A program made the translations under genes and the position numbers. From sequence record NC_055733.1: a DNA stretch of 64,000 bases. One strand, written 5' to 3'. The notes under the pieces are model-generated. The model ran no database searches, was not told the DNA's origin, and saw only the letters and a list, made by a program, of their open reading frames with translations. Below, piece after piece: positions 3,280-41,380 of the stretch (the stretch's first letter is position 1; every line of letters begins with the position of its first letter).

Positions 3280-3731
3280 TTAAACACCGTTATGATAGTT
3301 GATAACGTATTCTTTCAGCTCTTGATAAAAAGCCTGATACTCGATAGCGCGAATAATGTCCTTCGGACCAACACCCTTCAAACGTCTTATATCGCTATTG
3401 TGTCGGAGATCGCTCATTTTGATGTAGACAGAACGAATGTCGGACTTGACTCGTTGCTTGTAAGAATCCATACTTTCGCCCTTGATCTTACTCACATTTT
3501 GAACAAGTTGAACGGCTTCTAGCTCATGCCGTTAGAGATCAAGAGATCTCGTCCACCTTCGATATCTTCAATGATATCATGAGCCAACGCTGCCTGTTTA
3601 GTAGCTTCGTCAGCACACTCCGGAAGACCCTCCATAACCGCCAAGCAGTGTTCGAAATAGGGACGTCCACCTTTGTCGTTAGTTTCCGAGAAAGCAGTTG
3701 CTACCAGTGCGTACAGTTTAGCTAAAGTCAT
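3280..3731 (-). CDS. HD-domain (SpoT/Mesh1-like) hydrolase, split by a frameshift near 3520
   Basis: DKGGRPYFEH...AALAHDIIED in 3519..3731, and K.SDLRHN in 3280..3495. The frames join with a one-base shift (GMS / EAVQLVQNVSK). Confidence 0.7.
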
Positions 3732-22971: not shown

Positions 22972-23093
22972 TGGCGGAGAAGGTGGGATTCGAACCCACG
23001 ACCAACAGTTTGATTTTGCAAGGGTTTGCGGTAAAGAATCTTAATCAGATTCCGCTTTTTGCGACTACTGCTCTACCACTGAGCTACTTCCCC
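22972..23093 (-). ncRNA. tRNA-like RNA E1 (122 nt) with a greatly expanded anticodon arm
   Basis: Acceptor GGGGAAG/CTTCTCC with G3-U70 and encoded CCA; canonical D arm GCTC-AGTGGTA-GAGC and T arm GTGGG-TTCGAAT-CCCAC; ~54 nt in place of the anticodon loop. Confidence 0.8.
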
Positions 23094-32467: not shown

Positions 32468-32543
32468 TGGCGGGGGTAACTGGGCTCGAACCAGTGCATG
32501 ACGGAATCAAAGTCCGTTGCCTTACCAACTTGGCTATACCCCT
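32468..32543 (-). tRNA. trnQ: tRNA-Gln(TTG)
   Basis: ACGGA-CTTTGAT-TCCGT; CCA. Confidence 0.93.
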
Positions 32544-33677: not shown

Positions 33678-33917
33678 TCAGTAAGCGAAACTAAACAATC
33701 GTCTTTGTTTTGCTTTTAAGTCTTCTTCGACAACAGGAACATTATCACATGTTTCCGCAGTAGAGTAAACATCTTTTTGTTTTTCTTTTTCAGCGGCTTC
33801 CGCAGCTTTCTTTCTAGCAAGTGGACCAACGTTTTTCCACAAAGGCGCGTTGTACCATGCTGCACTACATTGATTCGCTGAGCCACGATTGGCACGAGCG
33901 TCTAAATCATTACTCAT
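33678..33917 (-). CDS. Small late-promoter ORF
   Basis: GGAG RBS and ACTAAATA motif at ~33944-33951. Confidence 0.55.
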   Translation of the reverse strand: MSNDLDARANRGSANQCSAAWYNAPLWKNVGPLARKKAAEAAEKEKQKDVYSTAETCDNVPVVEEDLKAKQRRLFSFAY

Positions 33918-33960
33918 TTACTAACTCCGTCTAAATTACAACAGTATTTAGTAACCAAAT

Positions 33961-34086
33961 TTAAATGCACTGTCGCGATCCCCGTAGGTGGTTCCCACCT
34001 ACTAGCCTTTGTTCGCACAAGCTTGCGGCTCTTAGCTACATACGAGGGCTTATCTCGTCCCATTTAGGTTAGGGCAATGCACTTAA
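33961..34086 (-). ncRNA. Candidate ~125-nt multibranch RNA
   Basis: Terminal TTAAGTGCATTG/CAGTGCATTTAA stem; internal ACGAG/CTCGT, TAGC/GCTA and GTAGGTGG-GAA-CCACCTAC stems. Confidence 0.6.
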
Positions 34087-34089
34087 ATT

Positions 34090-34163
34090 TGGTGGAGACG
34101 GCGGGATTTCCACCCGTATCTCAGATCCCAGTGACCTGCGATTATGAAGTTATCTACGTCCCC
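34090..34163 (-). ncRNA. 74-nt tmRNA-TLD-like / Ala-identity mini-RNA
   Basis: GGGGACG/CGTCTCC with G3-U70, A73 and CCA; no D stem; CAGGTC/GATCTG stem; degenerate T loop TGGAAAT. Confidence 0.65.
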
Positions 34164-34210
34164 GAGAAGGCTTAAACGTAACGAGTCAGAGGTTTAAGCG
34201 CGATTGAATT

Positions 34211-34285
34211 TGGTGGTGCATAGTAGATTTGAACTACTGACCGACGGCGTATGAAACCGCAGCTCTACCACTGAGCTAATGCACC
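34211..34285 (-). tRNA. trnM: tRNA-Met(CAT), elongator type
   Basis: Loop TTCATAC, canonical arms, CCA. Confidence 0.85.
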
Positions 34286-34814: not shown

Positions 34815-35414
34815 CTACACAATAGGACTTTCGATTATGACGTCAAGAACGGAATAATACGTGCTGTATTCCGAACTCATATCATCGTAATATGCGCGAA
34901 CTTTGCTTTCGGCATCGTCTACGTCTTCCGCTTCTACCAACTTAATGGTATCGAATGACTTAGAGGAACCCATGTATTCGCTTTTCATATAACGTATCTT
35001 AGCAAGAAACATCATCGTTGTAAACTACCTTTTAGCCGCTAGTTTGAAATATTCGCTGTTCGGTACCGACATCGGTTGAACACCAGTTAACTCAAGAGCT
35101 ATTAAACTCGGCATAGCTTTGAGGATAAGAGGCATCTGTATCTTATCAGGCAACGGACGCTTTTCAAGTTTGATTTTTCGAATCTCTTGCCACTGATTCC
35201 GTTCTTCGCAGGCTTTCAGTAGCTCAAGTTCTAAGTCATTGCTATAGTTAACACCATACGCGATTACGCTATCAAATTCAACTGGATTTTGATCAACATA
35301 CTCGATGATCTGCCGTAAAGTTTCGACGTCATCTTGAAACCAACCGCAGTTGATAAAACAATTTCCGACACAATCGCCGTTCTTCATGAACAGCGCATAA
35401 CTAGGTGCGCTCAT
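34815..35414 (-). CDS. Two small hypothetical ORFs inside the tRNA cluster
   Basis: 34815..35015 and 35025..35414, with RBSs. Confidence 0.55.
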
Positions 35415-35429
35415 ATTTTATTTCTCATT

Positions 35430-36260: not shown

Positions 36261-36334
36261 TGGTGGAGCACGGGGACTCGAACCCCGGATCTCTGCGTGC
36301 AAAGCAGAAGTGTTCCCAATTATACCATGACCCC
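36261..36334 (-). tRNA. trnA: tRNA-Ala(TGC)
   Basis: TCTGC-TTTGCAC-GCAGA, G3-U70, CCA; the 3' acceptor strand is one base short. Confidence 0.85.
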
Positions 36335-36344
36335 AAATTCTAAT

Positions 36345-40759: not shown

Positions 40760-40861
40760 CCGAGGATACTGGATTCGAACCAGTGACCCACTGCTTCTTC
40801 TGTACTCTCGTTGGAAAGCACAGGAGAAGGCAGTTGTTCTATCCCACTGAACTAATCCCCG
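40760..40861 (-). tRNA. tRNA-Arg(TCT)-like gene with a 28-nt insertion in the anticodon loop
   Basis: Canonical acceptor, D and T arms; ACTGC-CTTCT-[28 nt]-AA-GCAGT. Confidence 0.8.
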
Positions 40862-40885: not shown

Positions 40886-41380
40886 TCAAGGACTCCAGTC
40901 AAAATTTAAATCTTCCATGTATTCTTCGAGTATACATAGCTTGTAATCGATTGTAAAGCTTTTTGGCAAAACAAAATCAGGACCAACATCATAACTAGCG
41001 GTAATGTGTGGATGATAGTCAGGATAATCATGAGTTGCACCATGTTTCTCTCTGATCTCTTTGTGTCTAGCACCGAACCATGGGTCGGTGAGCTTCAACA
41101 CCAAAGCACGTTTGCCGCTTTGAGTTTCAAAGATATCAGGTATCATGACACCTTGCAACACTTTATCGATCTTACCACTTGCCTGAAACTCAGGCAAGTA
41201 TTTTCTTGAGTAGATCAAGGTAGTGTGTAGCTTATCATAGGGGACAAGATTAGGTATCCCCATTTCCCTACATCTTCGAACAATTGCCATTGCAGTGCGC
41301 GGCTTGTAACGTACTGCTACATAAGTGCCGCGCGTGTCTTGCTTATTCGCTTCTGTGAATTCAGAAAACGACTTTAACAT
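40886..41380 (-). CDS. 57B: gp57B / Acb1-family 2H phosphoesterase (anti-CBASS nuclease family)
   Basis: Two HxT motifs (LHTTL, PHITASY) and position next to 57A. Confidence 0.88.
   Translation of the reverse strand: MLKSFSEFTEANKQDTRGTYVAVRYKPRTAMAIVRRCREMGIPNLVPYDKLHTTLIYSRKYLPEFQASGKIDKVLQGVMIPDIFETQSGKRALVLKLTDPWFGARHKEIREKHGATHDYPDYHPHITASYDVGPDFVLPKSFTIDYKLCILEEYMEDLNFDWSP

Follow-up and report, generated by a model that had tools for sequence, protein, structure and literature searches.

The stretch of DNA analyzed here, referred to as the window, comprises 64,000 nucleotides (nt) of the record NC_055733.1 and is part of the genome of Ah1 (MG250483.1), an Aeromonas phage of the T4 type from the genus Cinqassovirus. 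On its minus strand, at positions 34090–34163, the window contains the gene of a 74-nt non-canonical RNA with the shape of a transfer RNA (tRNA), which is called the 74-mer below. The initial annotation of this locus proposed that the RNA resembles the tRNA-like domain (TLD) of the transfer-messenger RNA (tmRNA) without its mRNA domain, and the 74-nt string quoted there, segmented as given, is the reverse complement of the window at this position (34163→34090). The gene scores 96.6 bits with R1, a covariance model of the 74-mer family, and its cloverleaf is supported by covariation. It shares its strand with the 23 tRNA genes of the operon called by ARAGORN, and is placed between the upstream gene of tRNA-Met(CAU) (34211–34285, minus strand; recognized by both ARAGORN and Rfam) and a small conserved open reading frame (ORF; 33678–33917), with no promoter-like or terminator-like site separating it from the tRNA operon. 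The flanking genes encode a dNMP kinase, Acb1 (gp57B in T4), and endonucleases of the Seg-type GIY-YIG and HNH kinds, and this set of genes identifies the region as the counterpart of the tRNA region of T4. The deposited records of the carrier phages contain no annotation of the 74-mer.

The 74-mer is, judging from the alignments, a member of a small family that is present in T4-type Aeromonas phages and in at least one uncultured phage. The alignment of this family (A2) comprises ten sequences, that is, seven copies of the Aeh1 group, the copy of Aeromonas phage Ahp1_CNU-2021, and the copies L133a and L133b, which lie in tandem on the metagenomic phage contig L133.

All parts of the RNA are encoded on the minus strand. 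The 5′ strand of the acceptor stem, GGGGACG (34157–34163, nt 1–7 of the RNA), pairs with CGUCUCC in the 3′ segment (34090–34100), which continues into the discriminator base A73 and an encoded CCA, and both strands are supported by covariation. The initial annotation had listed this 7-base-pair (bp) stem with its G3·U70 pair, A73, and the CCA, and all of these are present. The D arm (34140–34154) consists of a 3-bp stem, GAU/AUC, also supported by covariation, around the loop AACUUCAUA, which is devoid of the GG found in all 23 real tRNAs. The arm at the position of the anticodon, CAGGUC-ACUGG-GAUCUG (34122–34138), reads C32 A33 C34 U35 G36 G37 G38, and is placed by an architecture descriptor, by ARAGORN, and by the alignment. 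It is followed by the 4-nt variable region AGAU (34118–34121), which is found in nine of the sequences, and is replaced by AAAU in L133b. The T arm, ACGGG-UGGAAAU-CCCGC (34101–34117), has compensatory changes in three of its five pairs and a non-canonical loop; both the degenerate nature of this loop and the 4-nt linker AGAU had been correctly described. The description of a short helix, similar to P2 of the tmRNA and capped by 5 nt, holds in part, given that a 6-bp hairpin with the cap ACUGG does exist, but is located at the position of the tRNA anticodon arm. A 6-bp stem with a 5-nt loop is equivalent to a 5-bp stem with a 7-nt loop that has C at position 32 and G at position 38, and it is the complementarity of these two positions that produces the appearance of the longer stem. 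The same arm descriptor is matched by the real tRNA-Cys, tRNA-Trp, tRNA-Phe, and tRNA-Pro of these phages.

The cloverleaf with a 3-bp D stem accounts for the family well. Across the ten sequences, 98.4% of the alignment cells are paired and 13 pairs have changed on both sides, statistics that are inflated by relatedness, since the sequences are effectively equivalent to four independent ones (the Aeh1 group, Ahp1_CNU, L133a, and L133b). None of 500 shuffles matched the cloverleaf score, and only 37–60% of the cells were paired in controls in which the 3′ partners were slid by 1–3 columns. In the acceptor helix, 100% of the cells are paired and five of the seven pairs have compensatory changes. 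The D stem is likewise paired in 100% of the cells, with double changes in two of its three pairs, and takes the forms GAU/AUC in Ah1, GUU/AAC in Ahp1_CNU, and GUG/CAC and GUC/GAC in the L133 copies. An unpaired D region without a D stem, as was initially proposed, is not borne out, in view of this covariation and of the behavior of the alternative fold of the TLD type. In that fold, which leaves the D region unpaired and adds AUC/GAU pairs to the hairpin, the extra pairs are lost in up to three of the nine distinct sequences, with no compensation.

The comparison of these relatives thus shows the predicted structure to be a complete cloverleaf, with a 7-bp acceptor stem, a 3-bp D stem, an arm at the anticodon position, a 4-nt variable region, a 5-bp T stem, A73, and CCA. 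The nucleotides U8, A14, G10:C25, A58, A73, and CCA are invariant in the family, so that the basic L-shaped scaffold has probably been retained. The real tRNAs of the window can be aligned end to end with R1, but reach no more than 32 bits, in comparison with the 96.6 bits of the 74-mer. Changes that compensate one another have accumulated in the acceptor and T stems, and the most invariant segment of the family is formed by the anticodon-position arm and the variable region.

The same 74-nt gene is found in the phages PX29, AsFcp_1, AsFcp_2, Aeh1, avDM12-TAAL, phiWae14, and phiAS5. In these seven relatives, the 74-mer is 93–100% identical to that of Ah1, in comparison with 76–100% in the adjacent, genuine tRNA-Met, 84–99% in a structured RNA encoded downstream, and 62–65% in the untranslated leader of the next ORF. 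No other feature of the region, the neighboring real tRNA included, is under as strong a constraint as the 74-mer. The rare substitutions in the relatives either maintain or improve the pairing, as in the change of A49·C65 to A-U in most of the phages and that of one G·U to G-C, with one exception in the unverified record of AsFcp_1, where a G-to-A change disrupts a pair of the T stem.

More distant copies were recovered by two routes. A focused BLAST search returned the copy in Ahp1_CNU-2021, which is 76% identical, and a scan of metagenomes with the core motif returned the two copies of contig L133. The anticodon-position arm of L133a is nearly identical to that of Ahp1_CNU, though the acceptor and T stems differ, and the paralogue L133b has the same architecture. 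Among the motif matches listed in the metagenome and genome scans, of which there were at least 240, only L133 has the right context, and most of the others are due to chance. The architecture descriptor, applied to 2.1 Mb, returned only genuine tRNAs and members of the family, and the 74-mer is far beyond what is expected by chance. Three pattern scans of IMG/VR aimed at the 74-mer returned nothing beyond four known isolates, BLAST searches started from the divergent copies added no further lineage, and a synteny search by means of an L133 protein returned nothing. The window itself contains no close paralogue, the best non-tRNA match to R1 being one of 14 bits at 35350–35420, and no convincing parent was found among the tRNAs of the cluster, with global identities of at most about 67%.

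Contig L133 has three other RNA features on its plus strand, at 802–913, 271–343, and 3539–3613. These are a match to YrlA, a Y-RNA-like tRNA mimic, which, with 44.1 bits, is below the gathering score of 69, a third tRNA-like unit that ends in CCACCA downstream of a near-consensus promoter, and a tRNA whose anticodon loop has 8 nt (UUCA). These RNAs make up a cluster of tRNA mimics.

Beyond the shared cloverleaf, the 74-mer departs from real tRNAs in precisely the positions that characterize the latter. U33, a purine at position 37, the T-loop sequence UUCRA, and GG in the D region are common to all 23 tRNAs of the cluster, and in none of them are positions 32 and 38 occupied by C and G. In contrast with these tRNAs, the 74-mer is without U33, the D-loop GG, and UUCRA, and has a C32-G38 combination, which is a Watson–Crick pair; every one of the ten members of the family has C32, A33, and G38. 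A canonical tRNA is expected to have U33, an open 7-nt loop, and a purine at position 37, and the 74-mer does not conform to this pattern, with L133b also having C37. The triplet at positions 34–36 is CUG, with UUG in phiWae14 and L133a, so that position 34 is either C or U, and UCA, followed by C37, in L133b. The T loop has the general form UGNRAAU, extended to 8 nt in Ahp1_CNU, and is represented by UGGAAAU and, in the relatives, by CGGAAAU, UGUAAAU, and UAGUAAGC. The D loop contains AACU in all the members except L133a, instead of a GG of the G18G19 type, and the only GG of L133b spans the junction of the loop and the stem. The elbow formed by G18G19 and U54-U55-C56 is, then, missing from the 74-mer. 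Neither ARAGORN in its default settings nor Rfam at its gathering threshold calls a gene at this position, and in the family, only the paralogue L133b passes the tRNA model RF00005, with 39.9 bits. When the ARAGORN thresholds are lowered to 85%, the program returns tRNA-Gln(CUG) or (UUG) and tRNA(UCA).

The acceptor end points to alanine. The identity set of the alanyl-tRNA synthetase (AlaRS), that is, G3·U70, A73, G1-C72, G2-C71, and CCA, is present in the 74-mer and has been retained in two divergent lineages of Aeromonas phages. Position 3:70 is a G·U pair in all seven distinct sequences from Aeromonas phages, though the adjacent pair, 4:69, has changed from G-C to A-U. Every member of the family has a G·U pair in the acceptor stem, at 3:70 in the Aeromonas phages and at 4:69 in the L133 copies. 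The real tRNA-Gln(UUG) of the phage differs from the 74-mer in having an acceptor end of the glutaminyl-tRNA synthetase (GlnRS) type, with A1·C72, G3-C70, and G73. According to the identity rules based on G3·U70 and A73 (Hou and Schimmel 1988, as cited in PMC3968760), the 74-mer should be a substrate of AlaRS and not of GlnRS.

The identity of the acceptor does not, therefore, match the anticodon, given that an end of the alanine type is combined with a glutamine triplet. The 74-mer resembles the tRNA-Ala(UGC) (36262–36335) and the tRNA-Gln(UUG) (32468–32543) of the window in its operon, strand, cloverleaf, size (74 nt), and encoded CCA, and its acceptor end is like that of the tRNA-Ala(UGC) (GGGG.../...CUCCACCA), and its triplet is a glutamine anticodon. 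With 41.2 bits, the annotated tRNA-Ala(UGC), on the minus strand, scores lower with the Rfam tRNA model than any other tRNA of the cluster; the lower part of its acceptor stem is imperfect, and it shares with the 74-mer, in addition to these ends, a 4-nt variable region of the GAUC/AGAU type.

The explanation that appears to have somewhat better than even chances is that the 74-mer is a functional, non-canonical, and probably alanine-accepting tRNA mimic that takes no part in decoding and acts as a decoy. Most of this weight falls on its being a functional, non-canonical tRNA mimic, rather than a TLD or a pseudogene. In such a scheme, RNase P would generate the 5′ end at G1, and the encoded CCA would be freed from a 19-bp helix formed with the downstream RNA and then trimmed by exonucleases, after which the AlaRS of the host would charge the molecule. 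The closure of the anticodon loop by C32-G38, the presence of A33, and the altered elbow suggest that the 74-mer would be poor in ordinary decoding, or absent from it altogether. In the weakest step of the scheme, the nearly invariant anticodon-position arm and variable region may constitute the working surface of the molecule, with which an abundant RNA might bind and occupy a tRNA-recognizing protein of the host or the phage, serving as bait or decoy and not as an adaptor.

Several observations weigh against this explanation. The L133 copies have C3-G70 (L133a) and A3-U70 (L133b), together with G4·U69 in both, and the absence of G3·U70 from these copies implies that alanine charging may not be the common denominator of the family. 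The restriction of the variation to C or U at position 34, and the existence of a UCA paralogue, would also be expected of a real decoder. There is no gene for a partner protein near the 74-mer, where the neighboring genes encode homing endonucleases, Acb1, the dNMP kinase, and proteins of unknown function. The small number of independent sequences behind the covariation, referred to above, counts in the same direction, and beyond the conserved cloverleaf, every step of the scheme is inferred.

Molecules of a comparable kind have been described in bacteria. In the non-proteinogenic tRNA-Gly species of the staphylococci, for example, both the D and T loops are altered. The tRNA-Other of Bacillus cereus (PMC3399842), a non-translational pseudo-tRNA, is, like the 74-mer, tRNA-shaped, with deviant loop positions, is chargeable, as the 74-mer would be, and is apparently outside decoding. 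It belongs to another organism, has a different amino-acid identity, and has no relationship in sequence, and the analogy would be purely functional. By analogy, the 74-mer would work most like the non-translational pseudo-tRNAs, while in its position it resembles the stable RNAs of T4, RNAC (species 1) and RNAD (species 2). These small RNAs likewise directly follow a tRNA in the syntenic tRNA region of T4-type phages (PMC3014915), and both regions have Acb1/gp57B, the dNMP kinase, and Seg endonucleases nearby. The RNAC ends in a tRNA-like T arm and acceptor, as does the 74-mer, but the T4 RNAs are 119 and 139 nt long, are not cloverleaves, and have no Rfam family in common with the 74-mer. 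Their role is still unassigned (PMC3014915). A homology with rnaC and rnaD was considered and rejected, since no likeness was found by eye, in Rfam, or with R1, which was run with the filters off on L010 1909–2172.

A more ambitious extension, which can only be put forward tentatively, is that the family represents a new class of phage-encoded, alanine-chargeable, non-decoding tRNA mimics, in which the invariant arm would bait a tRNA-directed factor of the host and thereby shield the translation of the phage. Such a class, doubtful as it is, would be recognizable by an acceptor-stem G·U, C32-A33-NNN-N37-G38, a T loop of the form UGNRAAU, and the lack of GG in the D loop. The possible targets of the bait include an anticodon nuclease, some other tRNA-targeting immune effector, and a tRNA-modifying enzyme, with SmpB being the least likely.

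The alternative that survives best, albeit as a rather unlikely one, is that the 74-mer is an eccentric but real decoder, either a second glutamine isoacceptor (CUG/UUG) or an alanine-inserting tRNA for CAG/CAA, and the altered loop of such a decoder might resist the anticodon nuclease of the host. The relaxed ARAGORN search gives it the name of a tRNA-Gln(CUG/UUG), the only variable position of the loop is the wobble position, 34, and the paralogue L133b, which has the same frame and the triplet UCA, passes the Rfam tRNA threshold. The phage also already has isoacceptor pairs of this kind, in the form of the UAA/CAA leucine tRNAs. A decoder is difficult to reconcile, however, with an A33 where all 23 real tRNAs have U33, with a C32-G38 pair that can shrink the loop to 5 nt, and with the absence of the GG/UUCRA elbow. 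The acceptor, being of the alanine rather than the GlnRS type, would lead to the insertion of alanine at glutamine codons, and the gene escapes both the default ARAGORN search and the Rfam gathering threshold.

A second alternative concerns the RNA encoded immediately downstream of the 74-mer. This conserved structured RNA of 138 nt (33955–34092, minus strand; MFE z = −4.56) has a 19-bp closing helix that takes in the CCA of the preceding tRNA-shaped unit (CCA:UGG) and has five compensatory pairs between the Aeh1 group and the phages Aswh_1 and ZPAH1. In the latter two, the structured RNA follows a genuine tRNA-Leu(UAA), and the 74-mer is absent, while in Ahp1_CNU the 74-mer is present without the structured RNA. 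It is non-coding and has no family in Rfam. Unannotated homologues are located at L053 1417–1560 and L054 1417–1560, with sizes of about 138–144 nt, and an IMG/VR scan with a 15-mer of this RNA returned 41 loci, which were not screened individually. A CCA-clamping structure following the Ahp1_CNU copy was rejected, as the fold is insignificant (z = −1.0), and a tag-like or other ORF in the 150 nt downstream of the 74-mer was discarded as well, given that its ATG is not conserved and indels break its frame in what is a covarying RNA. The structured RNA probably determines the 3′ processing of the 74-mer, yet is separate from the tRNA-like RNA.

The 74-mer could, on this basis, be a by-product, that is, a tRNA-shaped processing signal, or “punctuation”, which recruits RNase P and the 3′-end enzymes to its neighbors, and to the 138-nt RNA in particular. 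The structured RNA always follows a tRNA-shaped unit ending in CCA, with which it pairs, and the stable RNAs of T4 occupy the same place in the tRNA operon. The chances of this explanation are nevertheless slim, because punctuation demands no more than the shape, whereas the loops and the anticodon-position arm of the 74-mer are nearly invariant, to a degree beyond that of a real tRNA. The occurrence of the 74-mer without the structured RNA in Ahp1_CNU, and of the structured RNA without the 74-mer in Aswh_1, also argues against it.

The proposal of the initial annotation, that the 74-mer is a TLD without the mRNA domain, which binds SmpB as a decoy of trans-translation or acts as a tag-less rescue RNA, now appears very improbable. 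The concept itself has already been published (PMC4131195, PMC11915505), in the form of a phage TLD-only tmRNA that inhibits trans-translation. The mycobacteriophage DS6A is listed with a “TLD only” tmRNA, and tmRNA is inhibited by a molecule of this type, which may titrate SmpB (PMC4131195, Hudson, Lau and Williams), an inhibition that takes place in E. coli (PMC4131195, PMC11915505). In the 2025 tmRNA database, for which the RefSeq viruses were screened, the only forms without a coding sequence, besides DS6A, come from jakobid mitochondria and two plastids (PMC11915505), and in the part of its supplements that was available, there is no entry for an Aeromonas phage. The 74-mer does share a number of features with the TLD-only tmRNAs of the DS6A ssrA, the jakobid mitochondria, and the plastids of the Mallomonadaceae (PMC4131195, PMC11915505, PMC3590771), which have about 65–85 nt, G3·U70, A73, and a T arm. 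All have an alanine identity and no tag-coding region, and that of DS6A is also borne by a phage.

In the Rfam check, no tmRNA model reached its gathering threshold, although RF00023 was the best match of its clan, and a permissive one at exactly 34090–34163, with 17.2 bits against a gathering score of 47; its E-value of 9e-5 refers to a search of 801 nt, and would be about 80-fold weaker when scaled to the whole window. The alignment with this model deletes 324 central positions, and the matched part is essentially the acceptor and T stems. The TLD-only gene of DS6A (L295 28478–28560), used as a positive control, reached 43.2 bits (E = 6.5e-14) with RF00023, and 19 bits with R1, similar to an ordinary tRNA. 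A check with ARAGORN, as suggested in the initial annotation, never produced a tmRNA call, even with the thresholds at 85%.

The TLD hallmarks that had been claimed are, in fact, restricted to the alanine identity, with G3·U70, A73, and CCA being conserved in the Aeromonas phages, though G3·U70 is missing from L133a and L133b. A TLD has an acceptor stem ending in CCA, exclusive alanylation through G3·U70 and A73, and a reduced, stemless D loop (PMC3968760), and its interactions between the D and T loops are needed for the binding of SmpB (PMC3968760). The T loop engaged in these contacts is tRNA-like, with UUCRA, the site of m5U/Ψ, and its counterpart in the D loop is GG. The TLD is without an anticodon stem-loop, which leaves space for SmpB (PMC4131195, PMC3968760), and in the TLD complexes, this protein is found where the D and anticodon stems would otherwise be (PMC3968760). 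In the gene of DS6A, the D loop is still unpaired and includes UGG, helix 2a has its CGAC/GCAC junction, and the sequence of the T loop, UUCGAUU, is canonical. The TLD-only tmRNAs in general have a stemless D loop with GG, a P2a junction, a UUCGA T loop, and no anticodon arm, and the 74-mer differs from them. Its D stem covaries, pairs of the TLD-type fold are lost in the divergent copies, a full arm fills the space that SmpB would occupy, and the elements said to be required for the binding of this protein have given way to a UGGAAAU T loop and a D loop that lacks GG. Given that the resemblance is limited to the acceptor and T stems, with the D and anticodon space filled by arms of its own, the 74-mer is unlikely to be a decoy of SmpB, and is outside the tmRNA family by the features tested.

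The variant of a permuted, two-piece tmRNA was also rejected. The match to RF04321, which runs into the spacer, is weak, its 13.8 bits being below the gathering score of 47, and the second 5′ acceptor strand, GGGACG, which would be located downstream, is not conserved, but varies without compensation in the relatives (GTGACG, GAGACG, TGGACG, and GAGGCG).

A functionless, decaying tRNA-Ala pseudogene, which had been suggested as a fallback and to which the alanine-type acceptor stem, the degenerate D, T, and anticodon loops, and the failure of the gene finders all lend some color, can be set aside for practical purposes, because the 74-mer is the most conserved feature of its region, 13 compensatory pairs have preserved its helices across a deep divergence, and the same “defects” (A33, C32-G38, no GG, UGNRAAU) recur in every lineage, including the metagenomic phage.

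The clusters of tRNA genes in phages are usually interpreted as a supply for codon usage and, more recently, as replacements for the tRNAs that are destroyed by the defenses of the host. An RNA that is more tightly conserved than a real tRNA, and is yet consistently stripped of the decoding features, while its signals for alanine charging are retained, suggests that some of the “tRNA genes” of the phages are not adaptors. The standard annotation tools overlook the 74-mer in all the genomes concerned, so that other mimics of this kind may be under-counted. The 74-mer also provides a negative example, in which a likeness to the TLD in the acceptor and T stem alone is insufficient to infer a decoy of SmpB, with DS6A showing what a true TLD-only gene looks like. 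If the bait reading of the tRNA mimic is true, it would represent a form of RNA-based counter-defense hidden among the ordinary tRNA genes of the phage.

A number of minor features of the region deserve mention. An 8-bp hairpin, GCUUAAAC/GUUUAAGC, with a 14-nt loop, recognized in the alignment of the relatives, is located in the spacer between the tRNA-Met and the 74-mer (34170–34199, minus strand). It is kept in most of the relatives, but the entire spacer has been deleted in Aeh1, which indicates that the hairpin is dispensable. The ORF at 40886–41380 (minus strand) strongly matches Acb1, an anti-CBASS protein (Pfam PF23474, E = 1.9e-35), and lies beside the dNMP kinase gene, as does gene 57B in T4. 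Two further Rfam tRNA matches, both on the minus strand, were not called by ARAGORN. The first, at 40760–40861 (53.7 bits, 102 nt), has the appearance, by eye, of a tRNA-Arg(UCU)-like gene with an insertion of about 28 nt in the anticodon loop, possibly an intron. The second, at 22975–23093 (54.3 bits, 119 nt), is distant from the main cluster, and combines normal acceptor, D, and T arms with an insertion of about 45 nt in the anticodon arm.

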